Below, one piece after another: positions 1,543 through 63,539 of a DNA stretch of 64,000 nucleotides (position 1 is its first letter; every line of letters starts with the position of its first letter). The stretch comes from Podarcis muralis (taxonomy: Eukaryota). The position numbers and the translations under genes are program-made. Below the pieces are notes generated by a model. It did no database searches, was not told the origin of the DNA, and worked only from the letters and a program-made list of their open reading frames with translations. The DNA is taken from contig NC_135670.1 in NCBI RefSeq assembly GCF_964188315.1, positions 868,001 to 932,000 of the forward strand. Direction: 5' to 3'.

Positions 1543-4500
1543 GAGGCGAGTGCAGGGCGGACCCGAGAGGAAGAAGAAAGGGAGCTGGAACAAGCAACAC
1601 CAGGCAGCAACTGCCCAGACTTGTTCCTGCAGGAGCCCTAATGTTGTTCCAAGACAGCAGCTTCTTTCCTCCGCGGTAACAGGAACAGAGAATTGTAGGG
1701 TTTGAAAACCACCAAGGGAGGAGAGTCCTCCACCTTCCAAGGGACTCCGTTCTGCTGTCCAACGGCTCTTTTGGAAAGTATGAGTTGGCGCTAGTTTGCC
1801 TTTCCGTGGGAAGTGAACTGAAGTTCTCCCTTGACCTCCGTGGTCCCCGTATACCTTCCCCTGCTCTTGGGATGGACCCGCAATGGGTGGCCCCACGTCC
1901 TCCGACCTGACTAGGAGGAGAGGCGCTCAACGCCCTTCTTCTTACCTGTTGGCCGGATGTTGATGAAGGGGTAGTTGGGCATCACCAGCTTGTTGAAGTT
2001 GAACTTGTAGGTGAACCTCTTCCCTTTCGTCTTGTGGAGGATCCGCTTGTTATAGTAGTATCTGCCAAATAAAGTAAGGGAGGATATAAGGGCGCCAGCC
2101 AGCCGTGAGGAATGCTCCGTCCAGGCAGCTCAGTGGGGGAAGCACTGGGGTTGCCTGCAGAAGTCCCTGGGTTCAATCCCCAGAAGCCTCCCACATTCCT
2201 TTATTTGGAAACACAAGGACTGGAATCTTAGTTGAGATTCTGTAAGACAGGGGCCGTAATTCAGTGGTGAGAACACCTGCTTTGGCTGCAGAAGGGTTCC
2301 ATCCCTGGCATGGCCAGCTAGCGCTGGGAACGTCCCCGGCCTGAAACCCTGGAGAGCCGCTGATGCCAGTCAGTGTCTACAATACTGAGCTAGATGGACC
2401 AAGAGTCTGCCTTGGCATAAGACTGCAACACCTAGAACCTGCCTTTGTTTTTACAGGGAGGGTTGGAGCTCATTAATGGAACATCTGCTTTGTACGCAGA
2501 AGATTCCTGGGCCCAGTCCCCACGGGGGTCTCCAGGCAGGGCAGAGGAACGTCTTCGCAGACCACAACCAGGCAAGCTGCTAATTCTGCCAATCCGTGCT
2601 GTCAATACTGGGTAAGACAGAAGGCAGCTTCCGCTGTTCCTGAAAGAGGCGCCTGAAGGGAAGAGCACAATGGGAGACGGGTTTCCTCCTGTCAACCTGT
2701 TGGGCCAGCCGTGCTGCTTTGTCTCCCCGGTGCCATTTAGAGGCTCCTGGAGGCGGCGAGGGCAGGGCTCTGCCTCTCCTCCTCCCTGGGATCAATGGCT
2801 GGGCCTGCATCCTCCGACCTGTCACTTCCTTCCTCTCCCATTAGGCACAGGTTGCCGCCTTGTTTGCTGATCTCGGCCTCCGCCACCGAGGAGTTGAGCA
2901 GAGGGCAGAGCAGCGGCCAAGTCCGTGGGCTCCCCTCTGCTCAGCCACCACCTCCCGGGGACAGAAGCCAGAGGAAAGAGGCAACCTGTTCACCACTTGG
3001 CGTGGGCCCTCAGGTCTTGGCGCTGGCTCAACAGCTCTGGCTGCCTCGTCGGGAGGAGGAGGGGGCGAGAGGGCCAGAAGAGGGGGGGGGGGCAAGGACA
3101 GGGAGCCTTGCAGAGGACCAAGAAGAGGCACCCCAGCAGCCCTAACAGAGGACTGCCTAGGATGAATCGTGGAAGCAGAGCCCATGGCAGGAACCAGCCA
3201 GACTCCTGCACTAGATACAGCACCCAGATCTGCAGTGGGCCTGTCCCAACCACCCCCCTCCTAGAGTCACAGAAACACAGAATTGTAGGGCTGGAAGGGA
3301 CCACCTCAGGGGTCACCTAGCCTAACTGGAATGCAGGAATCACAACTAAAGGATCCCTGGCAGGTGGCCAGCCAACCTCTGCTTAAGAACCTCCACAGCG
3401 GAACAGCTCTTACTTTCAGAAAGTTCCTCCTGATGTTTAGTCAGAATATCCTCTCCTGTCATTTGAATCTATGGATTGGGTCCTATCTCCTGGGTCAGCC
3501 GAAAACAAGCTTGTTCCATCTTTCATGTTGACAGCCCTTCAGATATTTTGAGCATGGCTCTCGTGCCACCTCTTCTCCTGTCTGAACAAGCCTGTTCCCC
3601 AGTTAGCCCTCTCTAGCCCAGAGAGAGTCCAGGGGGGCTTCTCAGTCAAGGACTGCCCCCTCCCCAAACAGCCAAGATTGTAAGACCCTGAACCTTTCAG
3701 CTAAGAGAGACCTCTGAATGGTTGCTGCGAACGCTGATGGCTCTGTTCTCCCGCCTCTGAGTGACAGCTGCTGGAAACTTCAGGGCTTGTGAGCTTCCCA
3801 ACAAGGAACCTGACTGGCCACTGTGGGGCAGGATGCTGGACTAAATGAGCCCCCAGGACCTGAGCCAACCGTCAGGCTCTGCCAATGTTCTTATGACTTG
3901 ACTGCAGTTCCGGCACTGCAGCGGGTTGGACTAGATGACCCTTGGGATCCCTTCCAAATTTGCAAGCCTGAAACTTGGTGTGCCACCCTAAACAGCACGC
4001 TACATTCAAGCCTCACTTCCACAACGAGGGAACTGAATCCCAGGAAGCCAGCTGTGGCTGATCAAGGGATCCATTTTGTACCCTCCACCCTCTGGACTTT
4101 CAAGAGCAGACACAGAACAGGATTGGGAAACTTCCTGGAAGGCTGACAGCACAATTCTCAGAGGAAAACCTTCTGCCTTCGAAAGGACTCCTTATCGCTT
4201 GGAACACAGGCCTAGGATTGCACCCGAAGCACTTCAGATTGCAGAACCCTGCAAACCACAGAGAGCAAGTCCCATGTTGACCTAGTTAGGAGCCAGAGAA
4301 GAGCCCAGCCTTCTGCCCTTGCAGAAATCTCACCCAGGGCCCATTTCAGACCTGACAGGGGTGACTTTGTTGACAAGACAGGCCAAGCTCCTCTTACTCA
4401 GGCCCTCAACTCCCACATTCCCTGGGCCTGCACCCTGCTACCCCTCACCTGAGGGCCCGGCTGAGCTTGTCGTAGTTCATCTGGGGCTTGCACTTCCTCC

Positions 4501-4687
4501 GGCCCCACAGCCGCGCCACCTCGTCGGGGTCCTTGATGACGAACTCCCCGTACTCCCCCTGCTGCCAGGCAATGACGTGCCGGAACTCCTCCTTCTGCAG
4601 AAGCTCCAGGATGAAGTGCCAGAGCTGGATCTGGCGGGAGCCTGGGCTGGACTCCGTCTTGTAGGCCCAGTCTGGGAAGTGGTAGGC
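1..4687 (-). CDS. ETV3: ETS variant transcription factor 3, partial. Coding exons 4687-4449, 2061-1946 and 122-<1; the ATG exon was not found and the last exon runs off the window.
   Basis: Exons translate to [80 protein letters not shown] / [38 protein letters not shown] / [36 protein letters not shown], with GT-AG boundaries. [15 protein letters not shown] and [11 protein letters not shown] match ETV3 rather than ETV3L or ERF. Confidence 0.95.
595..985 (+). mobile_element. L2-clade LINE 3' fragment
   Basis: Encodes [16 protein letters not shown]...[10 protein letters not shown], followed by the family 3' UTR and a (TCA/TTA)n tail. Many copies occur in the window. Confidence 0.85.
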
Positions 4688-5168: not shown

Positions 5169-5368
5169 NNNNNNNNNNNNNNNNNNNNNNNNNNNNNNNN
5201 NNNNNNNNNNNNNNNNNNNNNNNNNNNNNNNNNNNNNNNNNNNNNNNNNNNNNNNNNNNNNNNNNNNNNNNNNNNNNNNNNNNNNNNNNNNNNNNNNNNN
5301 NNNNNNNNNNNNNNNNNNNNNNNNNNNNNNNNNNNNNNNNNNNNNNNNNNNNNNNNNNNNNNNNNNNN
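5169..5368. other. Assembly gap (200 N)
   Basis: Run of N between a poly-C tract and a CT-rich tract, between the ETV3 promoter and its first visible coding exon. Confidence 1.
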
Positions 5369-42376: not shown

Positions 42377-45300
42377 ATGGGTGGCAGAAGATTCAAGTTT
42401 TTACTTCGCTTTGGAATAGTCATCAACCTTCTCTTTGGTAAGTTGTCCAATTGCCATAGAAGGTCTGTCGCTCAGGTCTGATGGCATTGCCAAGGAGGGT
42501 TGATAGGGCCCACCCCTATCAAAGCCTGCAGAAGTTCTGCCAGTCTGTACACAAAACAAAGCTAAATATACCACATCAAGGGAAGTCATGTTGTTGTTGT
42601 TGTTTAGTCGTTTAGTCGTGTCCGACTCTTCGTGACCCCCTGGACCAGAGCACGCCAGGCCCTCCTGTCTTCCACTGCCTCCCGCAGTTTGGTCAGACTC
42701 ATGTTTGTAGCTTTGAGAACACTGTCCCACCATCTCGTCCTCTGCCGTCCCCTTCTCCTTGTGCCCTCCATCTTTCCCAACATCAGGGTCTTTTCCAGGG
42801 AGTCTTCTCTTCTCCTGAGGTGGCCAAAGTCTTGGAGCCTCAGCTTCAGGATCTGTCCTTCCAGTGAGCACTCAGGGCTGATTTCCTTCAGAATGGATGC
42901 GTTTGATCTTCTTGCAGTCCATGGGACTCTCAAGAGTCTCCTCCAGCACCAGAATTCCAAAGCATCCATTCTTCGGTGATCCAGTGGGTAGGGTAGGATA
43001 TAATTTTGATAGTTATGTTTAAGAGTGACGCTTATGATGCAATTTGTGCATTATACAGTAAGTCTAATGAATTTAAGGAAAATTCAGTCTTTATAATGGT
43101 GATAGGCAGTGCTGTATTTCTAGGAAAAGGTGCCAAAACACTTCTCTCGTTCTCTTAGAATGGCAATGGCACCCACCTGAGAGATAAACAACCCACAAGT
43201 TTCGAGGTTTCCACATTTAAACCCATTAGTGAATATTCCTGGGTTATCTTCCAGAAGTCTGAGGTTTAAGGATTTCCAGCCGAGGAGCATGTCCCTCTAC
43301 CAGTGGGGGGAGGAAAATTGCTGCCGCACCTGCCACCCACTGGGTGTGTGTGTGTGTGTGTTGTATTGTGTGCTGAGATTCCTCCTGTCTGGTTGATGGA
43401 GCTCCTTTGTAGCACCATGTCCAGGACGCCAGTTGTGCCTGGGTTTAGGTGGGCTCAATTCTGTTTTAGGAGCTGGTGCCAGGCCCAGCACACTAGATCC
43501 TCTGAAGTCTCATCCAAGGATCCTCACCATCAACTTAATTAATTTATATCTGCATATCCATTCATTATCTAAATATTTTGTCCCTCTAAATTATCCATAA
43601 TTTTTGTTACTTTACAAGTGTGGTTAAAATCCTGCTAATGTTTTCGTCTGGCTACAATGGTCTCGTAGATATATTATAATTTTCCCCCATTCTTTTTTTA
43701 AAGTTCTTGTTCTTTTGGTTTCTGAGCTTCCCAGTTAATTTTGCCATTTCAGCATAGTCCATCAACTTGGTTTGCCATTCTTCCCTGTATACATTGTTTC
43801 TTCCTTCCATCTCTGGGCTAGTAAAGTCCGTGCGGCTGTTGTTACATACATAAAAAGCCTTTTCTGGTCCTTTGTGATCTCAGTACATGTAATTCCTCGG
43901 TACATGTAATTAATTTCTTACTTAATTTTCCCTCCCCAAAAAACACCTAGGCTTTGTAAGCAATCGGGTACCAAAGACTCCTACGATTCAGCTGAACAGG
44001 ATCCTGGAAGAATCTGCCTTGCTTTCTGTACATATAACCTCGAACAATACTGTGTCCATCGTTAAATGGATATTCCACCCTCGACAAGGCGAGGCAAACG
44101 ACCTTGGGCGATTCAGCAATGGCACATGGGAGCGTTGGAATAAGAGTGACAGTTTGGGGCAGCGTCTGGAAATGGTTGATGGCACCACGCTGAAGATAAG
44201 CAATTTGGTGGTGAAGGACAGTGGGAACTACACGGCTTATGTGACGTTTTCCACAGGAGTGACAGAATCACACACATTCAGCCTCACTGTCTATGGTATG
44301 TACTTGTTTCACCATCCCACACTGTAAGGATGTGGGAGAAATTCAATCCAGTTCACTTTCACCTGCCTTTCACCTGCCCAGACAATGAGGTCCAGTGCCG
44401 AGGGCCTTCTGGTAGTTCCCTCCCTGCGAGGTTACAGGGAACCAGGCAGAGGGCCTTCTTGGTGGTGGCACCTTCCCTGTGGAACGCCCTCCCATCAGAT
44501 GTCAAAGGGATAAAGAACTACACAACTTTTAGGAGACATCTGAAAGCTGCCTTGTATTGGGAAGATTTTAATGTTTGGTGTTTTACTGTGTTTTTATATT
44601 CTGTTGGAAGCCTCCCAGAGTGGCTGGGGTAACGCAGTCAGGCATACAAAGAATAAAATATTTTTAAAAATTCATTTCTAACAGAGCCAGTGCGGGAGCC
44701 GCAGGTCACCCATAAACTGATCTCCAACGCGCCTGATGGCTGCAATGTATCCCTGCGGTGCCAGGCATCAGGAAAGGGAGACTTCCGTGTCTCCTGGAAA
44801 AGAGGGAATCCCCTCAGAGCCCTAGGCGAGAGCCCAAACTGGCACCAACTCTGTGACAGTGGGGAAGATCTCCATCTGTTCTGGCATCGCAACGCCTCAG
44901 ATGCCAACATCACCTGCCTGGTGAGCAATCCGGCTGATCAGAAGAACATTTCCATCAACCTCCTCAGCCTCTGCCCAGCTGAAGGTAAGGAACCCCTGGC
45001 CCATTTCCCCATTAGCCTTCCTTTATTTAATGGATTTGTATCCTGCCTTTCTCCAAGTTTGTTTTATTTGTCAAAATATTTGTATACTGCTGGCCGCAAA
45101 AAAGATATCAAAGCGATTTACAGCAACAAAACCATAAAACCGTATAAGAAAAGTTAAAAAGAGACATCAGTTAACTGTCTGGATTAATTAATTAGCTCTG
45201 GAGCCCACTGAAGATTCCCAGACTCCTCCCTCTATTGTGTGGGCAGGTATTCCCTCTCCCTACCTGGCCTGGTCACCTTGGCAACGCCTCCCTAGGCTGG

Positions 45301-48300
45301 ATTGGGCAACTGGCTGAGGTAGGCAGAGACCTCCAGGTATCTCACCTGGGGAAGGCGAAGCCAAGCCTGTGCTAATGGAGCCTCACTGGGTCCAGGGGCT
45401 GCGTGTGACCCCACAAAGGGCGCCCCCCCGTTTAATGTGGGGAGCGGTCATTGTGAGAGGATCAAAATGATTGTAAAATCAGTGGAGTGTATAAATCTGA
45501 AAAGGATAAATAACATTTTTTTGACAAAAAAGACCCGAGCAATTAAAACTGCAGTTTCCCCTGATATCAGCCCAGCAGTCAAGCAGTGCCTGCGTTTTAG
45601 TTTCCAAAGGCCTGTTTGAACGGGAAGGTCTTAGTCTGCCGGCAGACTAAGGAGACCAGAGAGGGAGCCAGTCAAACCTCTTCCCAGGTCACCACCAGCT
45701 CTGATTGTGATGGCCTGGGATTCGGACTCGGAGGCTGAACCTGAAGGATTCCCCACCTCCAGAACCAGCTGAGCCGGGGGATGAGCCTGAAGGGTCCTCA
45801 CCTGTGCCGGATCCTCAGGTGCAGGCACCAGCTGAGCCTGCTCTGGCTCCTGAGGTGATGGAAGACCCATTGCCTGCAGGTGCTCCACTCCCAGCCCCGT
45901 CAGGGGAAGCTGAGGTTGCCTCTGGGTCCGGTCACCCTCCAGCCTCTCTTGAGCTGCAGAGGCTCAGGGCAGAGAGGCGAAGGGAACTAAGTTCCCTCAG
46001 GAGGAGTGCTCGCCTTAGGTGAGTCACCTGAGGATTGGGGCCGCCCTATGCCTCGGGGCAGATAAAAACCACTCAGCCCCAGTCCCAGCTTGCGGGAGCA
46101 ACTTTGTAGGTTGCTCGTTCCTGCCTGAACCCAGCCCTGCGTTCCTGCCCTCACCTGACTCTCTGCCCTGCACCCAGCTCCAGCTTTTACAGACTGCCTC
46201 CAAATTGCACCTTCGACCTTGGCCTGGACTCGGACCTCGCCTCTTGGTTGCCCCACCGGACCAGCACACTGATGGTGTTGGGACCGAGAGGAGGTGCTCA
46301 TCTGAGGGACTTGGCACCCGGCCAGCTCCGTAAAGGGAGATACAATATTTTGGGTAACCTGGATCTAAGCCACGTAGGTCTTTAGAAGTCAAAACCAGCA
46401 TTCTTCTTCTCTTTCTCACAGGGAGGGACGAAGCAAGCACCATGGGGGCACGTGTTGGCGGGTGTGTGGTGAACACACAGGGTCCCCGGACGTTTCACTG
46501 TCTACTGATTCCTGTGCCACCACTTTATTTCTCGCTGCCCCCACCCAGGCCCTACCTGGGACAATACTGAATCCAGTCAGAGTTAAATTGGAACGTAAAC
46601 TTTTGTTTATTTACAGTGGTACCTCGGGTTAAGTACTTAATTCGTTCCAGAGGTCTGTTCTTAACCTGAAACTGTTCTTAACCTGAAGCACCACTTTAGC
46701 TAGTGGGGCCCAATTAGCTAATTGGTGGTGTCACCCTCCCTGTGGAACGCCCTCCCATCAGATGTCAAAGGGATAAAGAACTACCAGACTTTTAGAAGAC
46801 ATCTGAAGGCAGCCCTGTTCAGGGAAGCTTTTAATGTATTTTAATATTTTGTTGGAAGCCACCCAGAGTGTCTGGGGAAACCCAGCCAGATGGGCGGGGT
46901 TATGTATGTATGTATACATAAATAATAAAAAAATATTAACAATAAAATAATAATAAGAAGAAGAATAAGTTCTGGAAAGCCCTGGTGCAAAAACAGCATA
47001 AGTTTTTCATTCATTTAAGGAGGGTAACCAAGATGACCAAGGGTCTGAAAACCAAGCCTTATGAGGAAGGTTGAGGGAGTTGGGGATGTTTCGCCTGGAG
47101 AAGAGCGGAGGGACGGGTGATATGAGACCCACCTTGGCGATTTGATGGCAATTTGGATGGATTCTTGAGCTGGGATTCCTGCATTGCTGGGGGCTGGACT
47201 AGATGAGCCCTGGGGCTCCCTTCCAGTTCTGCAATTCTATCATGTCACCTCCTCTGCAAGTGTATTAAATAAGTTGAAATGAAATGATGCTTATCCCTTA
47301 AAGCACTGTGCAGTGCTACCTCTGGATGCGAGTAGACCGTAATATGTGACTGCGCGTGTCGCGTTTTGCCGCTTCTGCGCATGTGCGTGACGTCATTTTG
47401 AGTGCGCATGCGCGAGCGGCAAAACCCGAAAGTAATGTGCTCCGTTACTTCCAGGTCGCCGCGGAGCGTAACTTGAAAACACTCAACCTGAAGCATATTT
47501 CATAGAATCCTTGAGTTGGAAGAGACCACAAGGGCCATCGAGTCCAACCCCCTGCCAAGCAGGGGGTTTTAACCCGAGATATGACTGTATTCAGTTTGAG
47601 TAATGAGCCGTTAAGTTGGTTCCCTGAAAACTGGACTTTGGCTTCCTGTATTCCAAAACTGCAAAATTGGGATGGAGTGTTCGGCAGTCCAGGCAGCTGT
47701 GTGGTATATACTGCATTTGCTCAGCTAGAAAAGCAAATTAAGGTTTTGTGACAGCCCAGCTCTCATTCTGCCTGGAGAAAAGCTGAAATCAGTTCACTAT
47801 CTTTTCTGATGCCCTCCGTTGTTGTTGCTGTCGCCCTCAAGGGACAATTTTTGCTTATTATTGCAGGTGCAAATCAGAATAATTTTTGGATTATTTTGGG
47901 GAGTATTTTTGGGCTCGTTGTTGCTCCCGTTGCTCTCGTTGCTCTCGGACTCCTCATCTATTGGAAGTGGGAAGCATTAACATCCAGATTTCAAACGGTA
48001 GGAATGTGTGTGTGTTATTCTTCTGCCCCTCTCATCTGAGTTTGGGTTGCCACTTATTGTTTTCCCTTCCTCTTTGTTTATCCTGAGCGGCAGAATCTGG
48101 GCAGTTCCTCCAAATGATGTGTTTCATTTTACGTGCCACAGTTTTTACATCCGCAAGGCCAAAGGCACAGTTGGGTGCCAACTGTAATGCTTCCTCTAGT
48201 GCTTTCTCTCAAGTATTTCCGAATAAGGTTGGAACTCCACGAAGATTGGAATCCTCTTTACAAAACTGCTTTTAAAAAGAAGGGTGTGTGTGAAGGAGGC

Positions 48301-48855
48301 ATGTTCTTTGTTCTGCCTGCCAAAATGGGAGGCTTTTGGCTGATAAACAACCCACAAGTTTCGAGGTTTCCACATTTAAACCCATTAGTGAATATTCCTG
48401 GGTTATTTTCAGGAAGTCTGGAAGTCAGGAGCATGTCCCTCTATCAGTGGGGGGAGGAAAAGTGCTGCCGCACCTGCCACCCACTGGGTGTGTGTGTGTG
48501 TGTTGTATTGTGTGCTGAGATTCCTCCTGTCTGGTTGATGGAGCTCCTTTGTAGCACCATGCCCAGGACGCCAGTTGTGTCTGGGTTTAGGTGGGCTCAA
48601 TTCTGTTTTAGGAGCTGGTGCCAGGCCCAGCAAACTAGATCCTCTTAAGTCTCACCTAAGGATCCTCACCATTAACTTAATCAACAGCCCTGTTTCTTCC
48701 TTTGCCTGCAGGTTTTCTGCCGCAAGAATTCCACATCCAACACAACTGAATTGCAGGAAGTGGTAACTTCGCCAAGTGCCTCTCAAAATGGCTATTTAGC
48801 ATGTCCACCTTCGGAGCCAGACGAAACCAGTGACTCCACCCCACAGACCACGTGA
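42377..48855 (+). CDS. CD2/SLAM-family receptor A (signal, V-Ig, C2-Ig, TM, tail). Exons 42377-42437, 43951-44295, 44685-44984, 47867-47997, 48712-48855.
   Basis: Phases 1-1-1-0 give 981 nt (326 aa). Disulfide-less V domain (TLKISNLVVKDSGNYTAYVT); C2 domain CNVSLRC...ITCLVSNP...SLC; TM FWIILGSIFGLVVAPVALVALGLLIYW. The exact SLAMF ortholog cannot be assigned. Confidence 0.85.
42590..42978 (-). mobile_element. RTE-BovB LINE 3' end
   Basis: FWCWRRLLRVPWTARRSNASILKEISPECSLEGQILKLRL...GVTKSRTRLND followed by a (CAA)n tail. Confidence 0.93.
43545..43935 (-). mobile_element. L1 LINE 3' fragment
   Basis: Reverse strand resembles the L1 ORF2 C-termini at 10170-10745 and 63540-64000. Confidence 0.7.
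44385..44660 (+). mobile_element. L2-clade LINE 3' end between the Ig exons
   Basis: [36 protein letters not shown]. Confidence 0.85.
45706..46268 (+). mobile_element. Solo LTR, probably Gypsy, inserted in an older L2-like fragment
   Basis: TGTGA...GCACA termini; 5-bp TSD CTGAT at 45701-45705 and 46269-46273. Confidence 0.8.
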
Positions 48856-56018: not shown

Positions 56019-56294
56019 CTAATGCAGGCGAATATGTAACATCAAAAAAGGATGTACTGTATAGTGGTGATAAGGGGACAGGAAGTGTGTTTGGAGAGAT
56101 GGAGCGTGACATGAGCGTGATGAAGGAAATCTCACCCCCTCCACACCTCAGTGGCTCTCCTGGACTTGCACCACGTGCCACCGCTTGTGCCTTTGCAGGA
56201 GAAGGAAAGCAGAAGTCTTGTTTCTTGAACCACCACTTCAAATTGCTTCCTCAATAAAGTTGTTGATGCATCTATCTGTCCACCGCAGGGCAAG

Positions 56295-59200
56295 ATGAGT
56301 GCGGGAGGTTCAAGCGAAGGCTCCCTCACCCTCTTGGGGGTCCTCATCGGCTTGTTCTTTGGTGAGTTACCAGAGGTTCACCTCAGAGGTTTCCCTGGAT
56401 AGGTTTTCTTTAAAATGTATGAGCAATCACACGGGGCTGCTTAAGAAGATTGGGAATATGTTTATGAAATATACTCAGAGTCGAGAGTGCTTTTTATTCA
56501 GCTCATAGTGGTGAGGAGGAATGGAAGCTCCCCCAGAATGTCTGCTTATATACCATATTTTTCGCTCTATAACACGCACACGACCATAACACGCACATAG
56601 TTTTTAGAGGAGGAAAATCCATAGGCATGCTACCCGTAGGCATTCCCTCCATAACACGCACAGACATTTCCCCTTACTTTCTAGGAGGAAAAAAGTGAGT
56701 GTTATGGTGCCCAAAATACGGTACATTATTTACACAATGGGCCCCACGTGATTGGCCAATTCCAGGATTCTCCTGCACGCCAATCAGGTCACGGATTCAC
56801 TTCCACCTGGAGCTGGATTGGGTAGCTCCTGTGGACCAGTCAGACTGCTGTATTCTGGGCCCTATTGTTCTAGGACCAATCAGACTGCTGTGTTTTGGAT
56901 CCTATTCAACTCAGTACATAACAGTTTAACTCTGTCATATGCCATTTTCCCGGTCAAAATCCTCCCTAAAAACAGCCGCTGTTAGACTCTGTGTGCCAGG
57001 GCCCCTCTCTTCAAAAGCCTCAGGAGCTACTAGGTTGCGGTGGCTGAATAGATCCTTCATGTTCAGAAGCACTCTACCTTGGAATATCATTCACTGCCGG
57101 GGGGGGGGGGGGGCAGAGAGAGACAGAAGAGAGCAAGGAACACCTCTTCCTCTCCTCCTCCTCCTCCTCCTCCTCCTCCTTGATTTTCCTCTTCTTTCTA
57201 GACCTTCTTGATTTTTTCCTCCTCCTCCTCCTCCTCAATTTTCTCGTTCTTGTTCTCTGGATCTTCTTCTCCTCCTCAACTCTTTCTTCTTCCTCTTCTT
57301 CATTAGGTGCTGTTGCTAACCCGAATAAAGCTCCTCTGCATCAGGTTACTGGGATGGCTGGAAAACCAGTCCTTTTCCCTTTAAACATAACTGCTGGGAA
57401 AACTGTGCTGTGGATCAAATGGGACTTACACCCCCGAAATGGCACCCCCTTTGAGCTTGCTGTGCTCAGGAATGGACAACTGAGGACTTCCAACCCGAAA
57501 GACATGGACAGACTAGACGTGCTTAATGAGACCACGCTGCGGATCAAGGCCTTGCAGGAAAACGAGACTGGGGTTTTGAAATCTCGAGTGACATACACCA
57601 CCTCCAAGATGGAAATATTCGAATTCAATCTCACTGTCTTTGGTAAGTCATGACGAATCCGTCCATTTTTGTCCATCCTTCTGAGCAATTAATAAGATGG
57701 CTGCAACTTCCCCCTTGACAGTTCCTGCACCAGAGAGTGACCCACCTGATGTGCCCAGCGTTTCCCAAAGTGAAGGTAAGCAATTCATTGTTCCCCTACC
57801 CCATTCTCCACATTTTCTGCCTGGGAAATTTAAGTATTCATATATAATTCATAGGGACACAGGTGGCGCTGTGGGTTAAACCACAGAGCCTAGGACTTGC
57901 CGATCAGAAGGTCGGCGGTTTGAATACCCACGACGGGGTGAGCGCCAGTTGCTCGGTCCCAGCTCCTGCCAACCTAGCAGTTTGAAAGCATGTCAAGTGC
58001 AAGTAGATAAATAGGTACCGCTCCGGCGGGAAGGTAAACAGCGTTTCCGTGTGCAGCTCTGGTTCGCCAGAAGCGGCTTAGTCCTGCTGGCCACATGACC
58101 CACAAGCTGTACGCCGGCTCCCTCGGCCAGTAAAGTGAGATGAGCGCCGCAACCCCAGGGTCACCTGCGACTGGACCTAATGGTCAGGGGTCCCTTTATC
58201 TTTACCTTAAGTTGTGTTTTGCTGGAAATTCTGTTGTGTGTAACATAATTTGCACCCTGTTCTCTCGAAACTGAAGCCCCTTGTGTTTTCAGTGTTCCTA
58301 CATGCTTAGCTTTGGAGCACACAGAGCAGCTCTGCCTCAGTGCCCCCCCTTGTCCCCCCTTGCCTCTTATTCCACAGCCTGCCAGGGGTGCTGCCACCCA
58401 CTCTGGGAACTACTAAGTTAAAGCTATTTCCAAATGCGTACATACCATGCAGGGACAGTTATTAATTCACACCATTAAGGTGCACCAAATTCCTGAGTTT
58501 TTATCACTTTGATGGCTTTGTCCTGTCCAGCAATCTATAAACATTTTAATAGAACAAAACCCTTCAGTTTAAAGCTAAAGGTAAAGGTACCCCTGCCCGT
58601 ACGGGCCAGTCTTGACAGACTCTAGGGTTGTGCGCTCATCTCACTCTATAGGCCGGGAGCCAGCGCTGTCCGCAGACACTTCCGGGTCACGTGGCCAGCG
58701 TGACAAAGCTGCTCTGGTGAGCCAGCGCAGCACATGGAACGCTGTTTACCTTCCCGCTAGAAAGCGGTCCCTATTTATCTACTTGCACCCAGAGGTGCTT
58801 TCGAACTGCTAGGTTGGCAGGCGCTGGGACCGAACGACAGGAGCGCACCCCGCCGCGGAGATTCGAACCACTAACCATGCGATCGGCAAGTCCTAGGCAC
58901 TGAGGTTTTATCCACAGCGCCACCCGCGTCCCTCAGTTTAAAGCTATGGAGAACTTAATAGTTTTGGATTGCAAATTGAACCCATTTGCTTATTTTCATC
59001 ATTTTATCCCCTCATTTTACCTTGGGATGCGCAAACTGGCATTTTGATTGCAGAAGCCCCTAAGGAATAACGTTTGTTCATTGCAGGGGAATGGAGGACG
59101 ACTCTGGTGTGCTTCATTGTTGCCATGACGGCTGCAGGTTTTCGCTTCATGCAAATAGTTTTCAGAAGGTCTGAAAGAGGTAGGGAAGAGGCGTGTTTTT

Positions 59201-61813
59201 GTTTATTCATAAGACTTCTCACCTGCCCTTCGCCATAAGGTCCCAGGGTGGGTTACAGCCAGGCCTAGGCCATTGCAAGGACAGATTAGAAAGGCCCCAA
59301 CCAAAATGATGATGATGGGGATGGAACAACTCCCCGATGAAGAACGGTTGCAGCATTAGCTCAGTTGGTTAGAGGGTGTTGTTGATAATGCCAAGGTCGT
59401 GGGTTCGATCTCTGTACAGGCCAGTTGTGTATTCCTGCTTTTCAGGGGTTGGACCAGACCTGCCTTCCAACTCTATGATTCTGTGAGTGGCAGCCAGTGT
59501 CATTCTGAACATTTGGAACTTTTTAGTTTGGAGAAGAGGCGAGGAAGAGGCTGTCAAGAATTCTGCTCATATGGATCCAGAGCAGATCCCAATGTATAGT
59601 TAGCAGAGTGAAAACTTAAAACACGTTGCAGGATTCCCCCCAAAATAGACCAGAGGCAATTCGTATTTCATTCAGCAAAGCTACTGAAGGCAAAAGAGCA
59701 TAATGGTCACAAATCCATATACATTCAGAATGGTCCATAAGAAACCCAGTTGCAGCACACTTAACTTAAAACTTTGAGAGAGCCAGTGTGGTGTAGTGGT
59801 TAAGAGCAGTGGACTCGTAATGTGGTGAACCGGGTTCGCTTCCCTGCTCCTCCACATGCAGCTGCTGGGTGACCTTGGGCCAGTCACACTTCTTTGAGGT
59901 CTCTCAGCCCCACTCACCTCACAGAGTGTTTGTTGTGGGGGAGGAAGGGAAAGGAGAATGTTAGCCGCTTTGAGACTCCTTCGGGTAGTGATAAAGTGGG
60001 ATATCAAATCCAAACTCCTCCTCCTCCTCCTCCTCCTCCTCCTCCTCCTCTTCTTCTTCTTCTTCTTCTTCTTCTTCTTCTTCTTCTTCTTCTTCTTCCA
60101 ATAACTTATAGTAAGACTAAAATCTTAACACTAAGCATACTATAAACAGAACACCACACCAAATGCAAACTGACAGAGGCAACACAATAGAAGTTCATTA
60201 AAAATGTACATGGCATGGGAAATGTGGTTAGAGAAAGGGTTTTCTCCCTCTCTCATCACACTGGAATTTTTTGGCCTCTGACAAAGCTGAACATTGGAAG
60301 ATTCTGGACAGATAGAAGGCAGCCCTCCTTCACACAAACTATGGAACTCCCTGCCACAGCATCCATCAGCATGGATTCCTTTAAGAGGAGATGATAGACA
60401 TTCATGGAGGACAGGGCTATTGATGGCTACTAGCCACAACAGCTTCACTCTTGTCTCCACAGTTGGAGGCAACAAAGCTTCTGACGACCAGTTGCTGAAG
60501 AGCACAGGAGAGGACGGATCCTGACTGTGGGTTTCAGCCACTGTGAGAAGAGGATGCTGGGCTAGATGGGCCGCTGGCCTGATCCAGCGAGCTCTTCTTG
60601 TATTCTTATGTACTTATGACTCCCTCCCTGAAACCCTCAAGAGCTCTTCCTGGTTCAAGTAGGTGATATTGAGCTGGATGGACCAGGGTCTGAGGTAGGA
60701 CAAGGCAGCTTCCTCTGTCCTACCATGAAGGCATTTGGTACACCTCTGGGGGGGGGGAGTTCCACAATTTGGGGGCCACCCCCTCTGCTCTCTTGCGGAT
60801 CTAGGGAGGCCGACTGGTCAATGCAGTGAGATGATCTGTATGTATTTCATTACACCCCACAGTGCCGAATAATAGACCTCCCCTGAGCTTCATTATGGGG
60901 AAGAAGCGGAGGAAGAAGAGGAGATCCTCCACAGACAAGAATTGTGACCAGGTGAGGTGATCTTGCAGAGCGGCGTGTAATAAACGAAATTCTGCCCTTA
61001 TTCCCCTATGGGGGACACAAGAGCCCTTATAGAGTCCTTTGCAGGTTCTCCATCGGTCGGAGAAAATAACAGAGGCCAAGCAGAGAATATTGAGAAGCAA
61101 AGCAACTAGTAAGCCTGATCTTTATTGAACTGTTGCAACAGGGTGCTCCCCTCACACGCAGGAGAAGGAGGAGGACCCAGAACAAAGGTGTGCCCACCCT
61201 TATATAGACATTTTAAATTGCCCGCCCTGGAGTCAAAGACCACCCCCAGAAACATCATACATACATCACAGAAAGGGCGGTCTACAACAGAAATCTGAGT
61301 GCGTTGTTTACCTCCTGTCTGGCAGGTGACCTGTTAATGCTCACTTGATTGGATGCCCTGGGGAGACTGGCCAGTCTTTTGTAATGATAAGTACTTAGTT
61401 TCTGAGCCAAGTCACAGGCTCACCCTATTCATACACAGAGAGACTTACCCTTAAGACAGGATTAGTGAATGAAAAGGCAATGAGGAGGCTTTTCCATTGG
61501 AGCTTGCAGAGAAAACACCTGGTCAGCCTGGGAGTCAAAATGGCTCCATGGCTGCTCTCCTGTGCAGCTTCAGACGTGTGGCCTATATAACTATGGACGT
61601 GTTTGCTTGGTACATTTATGAACCTTTATTATATACATAAGACCTTAACTTATTTATTTCAGGCGGAACACTGGGGTGCTTTTCATTCACTCCCTCCATC
61701 AGGTGGTGCATGCACTGATAGGAACAGAGCCCAAACCAGAAGGAAGTCTCCAAGTGTTTGGGAGAACCTCAAAGTTTTCTGAAGAAGAAATTAAAAGTGA
61801 AGAGGGCAAATGA
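56295..61813 (+). CDS. CD2/SLAM-like receptor B (signal, single V-Ig, short stalk, TM, tail). Exons 56295-56361, 57307-57642, 57722-57775, 59087-59179, 60863-60951, 61703-61813.
   Basis: Phases 1-1-1-1-0 give 750 nt (249 aa). Signal MSAGGSSEGSLTLLGVLIGLFFG; Cys-free V domain (VLWIKWDL...TTLRIKALQENETG...FNLTVF) with several N-glycan sequons. The first three exons are firm; the TM and tail exons are less certain. Confidence 0.7.
57854..58208 (+). mobile_element. Sauria SINE
   Basis: Family head, body and tail. Confidence 0.9.
58577..58932 (-). mobile_element. Sauria SINE, divergent subfamily
   Basis: Variant head and 3' region; TSD TCAGTTTAAAGCTA. Confidence 0.88.
59352..59490 (+). mobile_element. 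tRNA-Ile-derived SINE with a CR1-like tail (Squam2-like)
   Basis: TTAGCTCAGTTGGTTAGAG...GGTTCGATC head followed by TTCCAACTCTATGATTCT. Confidence 0.6.
59778..60098 (+). mobile_element. Squam3-like (MIR/Ther1-derived) SINE with a (CCT)/(CTT)n tail
   Basis: GAGAGCCAGTGTGGTGTAGTGGTTAAGAG...GGGTTCG head, GGGTGACCTTGGGCCAGTCAC core, and a long CTT tail. Confidence 0.75.
60976..61661 (-). mobile_element. Solo LTR in an intron of receptor B
   Basis: TG...CA termini, 4-bp TSD GGCG, homologous to 12996-13544. Confidence 0.88.
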
Positions 61814-62211
61814 AGCCCAGAATTAGGCTTCCAAGCAGGGGAAGGGGGAGCCAGGCTGGGGCCCTCCAGATATTGATGGACCCCAGTTCCCATCCTGCTT
61901 CCTGACCAATGGTCCTGCTGGCTGCTGGGGCTGAGAGGGAGTGGGGAGTCCAGCAACCATGATGGTCATTTCAGGCCAAATTGCCCCCCCCTGCAACTGC
62001 CACTTCCCACAAATTCCAGTAACTCTTGCCAACCTTGCCCAGAACTGTCTCAGCCTTAACTGGTCACATGGACTGAGCCCCCCAAAAGAAACACGAAACA
62101 AACTTCTTATCACAAATCTGTGTGTATAAATATGCACCACCGGCCTCAGAGGTCAGGAAAGAGACACACACAGAGAGGTGGTTTATTTGGTTGGCCTAAT
62201 AAAGTTATTAT

Positions 62212-62563
62212 GGGACGCGGGTGGCGCTGTGGGTTAAACCACAGAGCCTAGGACTTGCCGATCAGAAGATTGGCACTTCGAATCCCCGCGATGGGGTGAG
62301 CTCCCGTTGCTCGGTCCCAGCTCCTGCCAACCTAGCAGTTCGAAAGCACATCAAAGTGCAAGTAGATAAATAGGTACCACTCTGGCGGGAAGGTAAAGGG
62401 CGTTTCCGTGCGCTGCTCTGGTTCGCCAGAAGCGGCTTAGTCATGCTGGCCACATGACCCGGAAGCTGTATGCTGGCTCCCTCGGCCAGTAAAGCGAGAT
62501 GAGTGCCGCAACCCCAGAGTCGGTCACGACTGGACCCAATAGTCAGGGGTCTCTTTACCGTTA
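62212..62563 (+). mobile_element. Sauria SINE
   Basis: Full length; CCTAATAAAGTT duplicated on both sides. Confidence 0.92.
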
Positions 62564-62933
62564 CCTAATAAAGTTTTTGCCTTTTGGATTTTTTCCCTAC
62601 AGGCCAGACTTTACTATTTCTGGATTTGTGGGACATGGTTTCCAGAAACGTTTTAAAAAGAAATGTAGAACAGAGTAAAGTGGAAGGAAGATGTTCATTG
62701 ATCTAGTAGCAGAGCACACTGTCCAGGGTTCGATTTATGGACTTGGGTCACCTGAACCTTTTCTAAGCTGCCGCCTGGGCCTGCATTCTGGATCCGGTCA
62801 GGTCCTGCATAGCTGATCCTTCGTTCTTCAGCTGCTCCGTTCATTCATAGCTGGTTCTGCATGCTAGAGTGGCTCAGGTCCTGCACAGCTTGTTCTGTTT
62901 CTCTCTGTCCTTGCAGGTGGATCAGAATGGAGA

Positions 62934-63293
62934 CAGTAAAAGGTAAAGGACCCCTGGACGGTTGAGTCCAGTCAACGGCGACTATGGGGTTGTGGCGCTC
63001 ATCTCGCTTTCAGGCCGAGGGAGCCGGCTTTTGTCCACAGACACGTGGCCAGCAGGACTAAACTGCTTCTGGTGCAATGGAACGCCGTGACGGAAACCAG
63101 AGTGCATGGAAATACCGTTTACTTTCCCGCCATAGTGGTACCTCTTTATCTACTTTCACTGGCGTGCTTTCGAACTGCTAGGTTGGCAGGAGCTGGGACA
63201 GAGCAACGGGAGCTCACGGGGATTCGAACCACCAACCTTCTGATAGGCAAGCCCAAGAGCCCAGTAGTTTACACCACAGCGCCACCCGCATCC
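62934..63293 (-). mobile_element. Sauria SINE, variant
   Basis: TSD CAGAATGGAGA at 62923-62933 and 63294-63304. Confidence 0.88.
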
Positions 63294-63539
63294 CAGAATG
63301 GAGAACGGCAGTAGCTTTCTCCCTGCCAATGAACTGCTTCTCTCCACAAAGTTTGGAGTTGATTCAGGTGTGCATCTCAGGAGTCACTATTGTTGACATC
63401 CAGCCGGCTGATGGCTTTTCTATTTTTCTTTTTAAAGAAAAGGCTACCTGAATCAGTATGCAAACTGAAGCACAGCTGTCCTTTGAAAGGTGCTAGAGGT
63501 GATTTCATTAAGAGCTTTCCCTGTGTATGGAATTGCCCC

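Follow-up and report, generated by a model that had tools for sequence, protein, structure and literature searches.

What kind of protein is made when a V domain of the CD2/SLAM family stands on a short stalk, with no C2 domain, ahead of a transmembrane (TM) segment that contains an Arg residue? This question is raised by receptor B, a gene of Podarcis muralis located in a 64,000-nucleotide (nt) stretch of RefSeq assembly GCF_964188315.1 (contig NC_135670.1, positions 868,001 to 932,000 of the forward strand); this whole stretch is referred to as the window, and positions are given in its coordinates. An earlier note on this DNA had proposed that B is a SLAM-derived receptor that converged on adaptor-coupled activation, possibly as the activating partner of the neighboring receptor A. 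The SLAM-type V domain, the lack of a C2 domain, the short stalk, and a tail devoid of immunoreceptor tyrosine-based switch or inhibition motifs (ITSM and ITIM, respectively) were all recovered in our analysis, whereas the adaptor coupling and the partnership with A were not. Receptor B is a genuine gene, already modeled in RefSeq and uncharacterized. The reading that we favor, which taken as a whole has an even chance of being correct, is that of a six-exon, C2-less CD2/SLAM gene without adaptor coupling, the product of which would act as a non-signaling ligand, decoy, or cis-modulator for the adjoining two-domain SLAM receptors, and the V and stalk exons of which would in part of the transcripts be joined to those of A', the paralogue downstream.

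The four exons proposed previously (E1 to E4) were placed exactly, and their peptides were reproduced by translation of the P. muralis window; their junctions carry AG/GT sites, every one in phase 1 (Table 1). These exons correspond to residues 1-183 (E1 to residues 1-23) of XP_077776728.1 (P0001; 222 amino acids), which matched the V exon at 100% in a full-library HMMER search and is named "uncharacterized protein LOC144325846 [Podarcis muralis]" in RefSeq. Since E4 ends in phase 1, coding could finish within it only by read-through of its donor, and the RefSeq model adds E5 and E6. The tail following the TM segment in this model consists of 43 polybasic residues without Tyr, and therefore the absence of ITSM and ITIM stands; the open frames between 59180 and the end of locus L001 also lacked the motif TxYxx[VIL]. 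Read-through of the E4 donor appends 23 residues, and that of the E5 donor ends at a stop after two codons. A glycosylphosphatidylinositol (GPI) anchor signal, of the type found at the C-termini of CD48 and CD58, was rejected because the tail after the TM segment is hydrophilic and basic, and because the E4 read-through also adds residues. The predicted protein would thus comprise a signal peptide and a V domain that is glycosylated and free of disulfides, followed by a Pro/Ser stalk of 18 residues, a TM helix, and this short basic tail.

The assignment of the V domain to the SLAM type was upheld by both sequence and structure (Foldseek), with SLAMF6, 2B4, CD84, and CD48 as the best solved relatives. 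The single V sequence matched SLAMF6 at 5.5e-5 among the sequences of solved structures; when a profile of 20 relatives was compared with solved structures, SLAMF6 ranked first (2.4e-12), followed by JAML, CD84, and, later, CD2. An AlphaFold2 model of the V domain had a predicted local distance difference test (pLDDT) score of 90.4, and a Foldseek search with this model gave NTB-A and 2B4 as the best matches, with CD48 and CD84 within the top 14 and nectins interleaved. Full-length but sub-threshold matches were obtained in Pfam with Receptor_2B4 (17.2 bits; cut-off, 21) and V-set (17.0 bits), and an NCBIfam search returned nothing relevant. No Cys residue was found in the 111 codons of E2, as in the disulfide-less V-set domains of the CD2/SLAM family. 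A CD300/TREM origin was rejected: no such chain appeared among the best 60 of 65 solved-structure matches of the profile at E values up to 0.01, or in the Foldseek top 50.

The replacement of the C2 exon by a stalk exon also proved correct for the P. muralis gene. The RefSeq model contains no membrane-proximal C2 domain, in contrast to the CD2/SLAM family in general, and tblastn searches in which C2 exons from A and from a gecko relative served as queries found no C2-like sequence between 56295 and 62946, the only matches being the C2 exons of A and A'. A C2 remnant within the introns was rejected, as this search was empty and intron 3 is mostly occupied by two short interspersed elements (SINEs).

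This arrangement was shared with other squamates. The nearest relative outside Podarcis was Sceloporus undulatus LOC121915771 (XP_042296214.1 and its isoform X1), with a V domain of 53% identity; this is a stand-alone, compact 3.6-kb gene encoding a signal peptide, a V domain, a homologous stalk, a TM segment starting with EW[KR], and a tail, but no C2 domain. Models in which a SLAM-type V domain is directly followed by a TM segment were also found in Zootoca, Eublepharis, Paroedura, Gekko, and Sphaerodactylus, and the TM segments of the Gekko and Eublepharis models resemble that of B. The V-stalk-TM layout common to Sceloporus and the gecko relatives points to a squamate branch of the CD2/SLAM family that has gone undescribed, and B is best read, from these comparisons, as one of the single-V SLAM-like genes that form an old lineage in squamates. 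A V domain of the B type (with the "G.LK" variant replacing "DSG.Y") occurs with a C2 domain as well in Sphaerodactylus, and this type of V domain therefore predates the loss of C2. No orthologue of B was found in Zootoca or Lacerta within the length band searched; the Zootoca "Ly-9" and "SLAMF6" proteins were rejected as orthologues, since they belong to another subfamily.

Table 1. Positions of the exons of receptor B and of other features of the locus (window coordinates)
Feature	Position	Strand	Description
E1	56295-56361	+	Start codon and hydrophobic signal peptide; 22 codons + 1 base, phase 1; donor GT at 56362
E2	57307-57642	+	SLAM-type V domain; 111 full codons, zero Cys, five N-x-S/T sequons
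Intron 2	57643-57721		79 nt
In-frame TGA	57651-57653	+	Inside the 79-nt intron 2
E3	57722-57775	+	Pro/Ser-rich stalk, 18 residues
Second intron-3 SINE	58572-58937		
E4	59087-59179	+	Transmembrane segment; ends in phase 1
Arg172 codon (CGC)	59143-59145	+	In E4; the basic residue in question
E5	60863-60951	+	Polybasic cytoplasmic segment, phase 1 to 0
AATAAA	60979-60984	+	28 nt past the E5 donor; possible alternative 3' end
E6	62917-62946	+	Final nine codons and stop; 3' end overlaps a SINE
SINE at E6	62936-63294		
Receptor A	43926-48036		V+C2 paralogue
V domain of A	43926-44300		
Mapped tail exon of A	48709-48840		
Receptor A'	~67700-69700 (L001:21390-23416)		V+C2 paralogue (~67700-69300) past the window end; V exon ~3.7 kb beyond it
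ETV3 exons	1950-2063; 4448-4687	-	

RNA evidence was drawn from contig runs X1, X4, and X8 (three studies) and raw-read run X22 at 95% likeness to the genome; a contig demonstrates that a sequence is present but says nothing about absence, and an allele that has diverged might fall short of this likeness. One contig covered the V exon in each of X1, X4, and X8, at a depth of 5-8. All three left the genome at 57305/6, and those of X4 and X8 also at 57639, continuing there with further letters; these departures at the edges of the V exon indicate spliced RNA, and both of its splice sites were used in X4 and X8 (two studies). The three bases left unmatched where the exon ends on its 3' side fit a T-to-C allele at 57640 seen in the sister species. 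In X8, approximately 57 nt were covered in the 57650-57849 bin, which by depth arithmetic matches the stalk exon, and the end of the X4 contig coincides with the end of this exon. Concerning the two junctions predicted earlier, use of the 3' site of the V exon at 57642/57722 was found in X4 and X8, while coverage of the stalk exon itself was given by depth arithmetic; at 57775/59087, the splice sites and the RefSeq model agreed, whereas the four runs provided no direct RNA support. In X22, depth was below 1 on the V exon, corresponding to hardly any expression of B. The X1 contig read 21 nt into intron 2; if this intron were retained, the frame would stop after three codons and yield a secreted V-only product.

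The RNA contigs of the three studies differed from the reference at residues 28-41 of the V exon (57390-57431), mostly by amino-acid changes: K31E, W35M, and H41Y were common to most or all of the runs, with A29S, V33L, L34Q, and H41F added in X4. The variant states agree with P. raffonei and P. lilfordi. This cluster may have arisen because the reference allele is divergent or because the ligand face is under diversifying selection.

Several results weigh against the reading of B as a self-contained ligand or decoy gene. The bins of E1 and of the TM exon had zero depth in all four RNA runs, and approximately 73 nt following the stalk exon in X8 could not be placed on 59087-59179 at 95% likeness. 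All three RefSeq isoforms (X1-X3) of P. raffonei LOC128404415 connect the V and stalk exons of B with the exons that encode V and C2 in A'. In P. lilfordi, E1 (intact in P. raffonei) contains a 1-nt deletion in a CCC run (L002:12756-12881), resulting in a frameshift. The dN/dS ratios (nonsynonymous to synonymous substitution rates; exon-by-exon Nei-Gojobori method) were 0.92 for P. lilfordi and 0.65 for P. raffonei, indicating weak constraint. Furthermore, the role of ligand, decoy, or cis-modulator would be the most likely one by analogy with CD48, SLAMF8, and SLAMF9, which function without ITSMs, and is argued from these proteins rather than from B.

Among the alternatives, the one that best survives is that the V and stalk exons are mainly cassette exons of read-through transcripts into A' (and perhaps from A), giving Ly9-like multi-domain products, and that the TM and tail exons of B are rarely or never used. 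It would account for the P. raffonei isoforms, in which V and stalk are joined to V-C2(-TM) of A', and for a 703-residue product called over the whole P. muralis locus, the A-B-A' make-up of which is only estimated from domain lengths. The junction from the stalk to A' is in frame because all exons are in phase 1, and the 73 nt by which the X8 contig extends past the stalk lead to a site outside 56250-62249. The zero depth of the TM exon is also in its favor, X22 barely covering even the V exon. On the other hand, the products of LOC128404415 start at Met16 within the V exon of B without a signal peptide, which gives them a partial or non-productive look; E4 to E6 have good splice sites and open frames kept in three species; the stalk-TM arrangement is common with the stand-alone Sceloporus gene; and B is treated as a gene of its own in RefSeq and in the annotation of P. 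lilfordi, where B and A' are separate genes. A predominant use as cassette exons therefore appears unlikely, albeit with appreciable weight, while the V and stalk exons of B probably also take part in read-through transcripts. In most transcripts, the stalk may be followed either by the TM exon of B or by exons of A'.

The adaptor hypothesis was based on the TM Arg, which would pair with the Asp of an ITAM (immunoreceptor tyrosine-based activation motif) adaptor: FcR-gamma, CD3-zeta, or DAP12. The presence of Arg inside the hydrophobic run was confirmed by hydropathy, the best 19-residue window (residues 159-177) including both R172 and Q175. Among the sequences compared, however, R172 was confined to P. 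muralis, P. lilfordi, and P. raffonei, and its column in the TM alignment was hydrophobic in every aligned non-Podarcis sequence (four gecko relatives and Sceloporus). Within the reach of these data, the Arg is therefore a derived residue limited to Podarcis, and this charged TM residue is not conserved among orthologues outside the genus. The alignment also defined the depth of this residue: a Trp at the outer start of the TM segment is common to all aligned relatives, and the inner boundary is marked by the Q175 column of Podarcis, which is occupied by Lys in Sceloporus, Eublepharis, Paroedura, and Sphaerodactylus. At approximately position 16 of the ~22 residues of the TM segment, R172 lies further into the membrane than this Lys column, by three residues. 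FcR-gamma, CD3-zeta, and DAP12 pair via residues in the outer third or center of the TM segment, and a basic residue of the central type pairs with DAP12 and DAP10. R172, by contrast, is in the inner third of the helix, away from the depth of the adaptor Asp. Judged from the alignment, Arg172 would be a substitution of the Podarcis lineage approximately one helical turn inside the cytoplasmic boundary, in the inner leaflet, a claim that forms part of the favored reading and shares its even strength; from this position its side chain could reach the lipid head groups.

Adaptor-coupled SLAM receptors are not a new idea: according to PMC4536121, PMC6557307, and PMC2413239, CD2/SLAM-like receptors of Xenopus carry TM segments with an NxxR motif and associate with FcR-gamma, the NxxR position being N-terminal in the TM segment according to PMC2413239. 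These receptors (Guselnikov et al. 2011, as cited in PMC4536121 and PMC6557307) share a SLAM ectodomain, a charged TM segment, and a short tail with B, and form a precedent for the adaptor hypothesis; however, the NxxR motif is absent from the TM segment of B, which has no Asn at position -3 and has its Arg near the inner end. The short tail without Tyr, the Gln that accompanies the basic residue, and another basic residue, which B and Sceloporus have in common where the TM segment begins on its outer side (EW[RK]), would also be compatible with an adaptor-coupled receptor.

Partnership with A was not supported either. The gene order A, B, A' was found within the SLAM cluster of P. muralis, P. 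lilfordi, and P. raffonei. The V domain of A' is ~87% identical to that of A; those of A and B are only 33% identical, unlike the near-identical ectodomains of paired receptors. No ITSM (TxYxx[VIL]) was found in an open frame downstream of the TM exon of A, where ITIM was not scanned for, and the single Tyr of the mapped tail exon of A is in a context fitting neither ITSM nor ITIM. Together with the lack of RNA support for use of the TM exon, these results leave little room for an ITAM-coupled activating receptor, with or without A as its partner, and from its sequence B is probably not an adaptor-coupled activator. There is a similarly slim prospect that B needs some partner, its marginally hydrophobic TM segment (Arg172, Gln175, and outer EW[RK]) assembling with an ITAM adaptor or another chain; if true, B would be the first SLAM-family receptor of an amniote known to couple to an adaptor, and it would do so with a single V domain.

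It is also improbable, to much the same degree, that B is a decaying gene in Podarcis, under relaxed selection after duplication in the cluster, with the TM Arg and Gln as damage. Apart from the dN/dS values and the E1 deletion in P. lilfordi, this explanation would fit the TM exon, in which five of six changes were nonsynonymous, the low RNA depth (5-8), and the tail ending in a SINE. In spite of these features, P. muralis and P. raffonei retain six intact exons with intact splice sites, free of stops and frameshifts; E4 (with its splice sites) and E5 are intact in the three Podarcis species, and E3 is identical at 54/54 positions in P. lilfordi. Exon divergence between P. muralis and P. raffonei, P. 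muralis and P. lilfordi, and P. raffonei and P. lilfordi was 2.75, 4.5, and 4.05%, respectively, or 0.6-0.8 of the corresponding intron divergence (4.6, 5.7, and 5.4%). Intron indel events amounted to 0.50, 0.56, and 0.69% per nt for the same pairs, from which approximately six exon indels were expected over the three-species tree, against one seen (Poisson P ~0.02, an estimate). The dN/dS values also have another explanation, since high ratios are usual for SLAM-family V domains. Polymorphism of the SLAM family is noted in PMC11882424. The reading frame of B is thus kept while its protein sequence is weakly constrained, which fits the norm of the family and also relaxed selection. As a result of the E1 deletion in P. 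lilfordi, the start codon no longer shares the reading frame of the signal peptide, and the model in this species compensates by upstream exons that give no clear signal peptide; the deletion may be an assembly error or the mark of a pseudogene.

Returning to the favored reading, the known proteins that B most resembles are SLAMF8 (BLAME), SLAMF9, and CD48. They share with B a disulfide-less SLAM-type V domain, heavy N-glycosylation (predicted for B), the lack of an ITSM and of any docking site for SAP or EAT-2, and a gene located amid SLAM genes; relatives of B are named "SLAM family member 8-like" and "9-like" in databases. Among the CD2/SLAM family, the ITSM (TxYxxV/I) for SAP/EAT-2 is confined to SLAMF1 and SLAMF3-7. 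B differs from these three proteins in having a short Pro/Ser stalk in place of C2 and a polybasic tail, and, unlike the GPI-anchored CD48, it would be TM-anchored. Sceloporus LOC121915771 shares the "NETG.LK" variant of the F-strand motif, the stalk, a TM segment opening with EW[KR], and the lack of C2, but has no internal charged TM residue, a tail of ~190 residues, and a VWA/UIM gene as its neighbor. CD300, TREM, NKp44, and NKp30 resemble B in their single V domain on a stalk, short tail, and basic TM residue; however, their V domains carry the canonical disulfide, and their basic TM residue is central or outer.

Other observations concerned the surroundings of B. At the end of E6, the stop and the two codons before it were read as overlapping the end of a SINE that is present in all three Podarcis species, and the short tail of B may have been born by SINE exonization, as suggested by the long unrelated tail of the Sceloporus relative. 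The window is SINE-rich lizard DNA, with a run of N at 5169-5368 that stayed outside the analysis; the second SINE of intron 3 is absent at this site in P. lilfordi and seems to be present in P. raffonei, in which the distance between E3 and E4 is equal. In Zootoca vivipara, LOC118076043, syntenic with receptor A (compared with 31752-54857 of the window), has a V domain only, a stalk exon, an A-type TM segment, and no C2; its V domain shows 35-36% identity to A and to B alike. A V-only gene at the position of A suggests that V-only and V+C2 forms swap at one locus among lacertids. UniParc entry P0068 is a V-then-TM SLAM-like protein fused to the ETS domain of ETV3, and its ETS part matches the two ETV3 exons of the window at 97-100%; this sequence hints that a V-only SLAM-like gene adjoins ETV3 in another species also.

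The activating-receptor idea, the part of most interest to immunologists, is unsupported. At this locus, phase-1 Ig exons of tandem paralogues appear to be mixed by read-through splicing, and automatic gene models in such clusters are therefore unreliable. The gene model of B itself was known from RefSeq; what is new is the undescribed single-V branch of the CD2/SLAM family in squamates, no description of squamate SLAM genes having been found in the literature searched. CD2/SLAM receptors are, in the textbook form, V+C2 proteins, whereas a C2-less V domain on a short stalk, in a lineage spread over lizards and geckos, would sit nearer the membrane. The shorter ectodomain of B would alter the intermembrane distance for ligand contact, a property that matters for the sorting of receptors at immune contacts.

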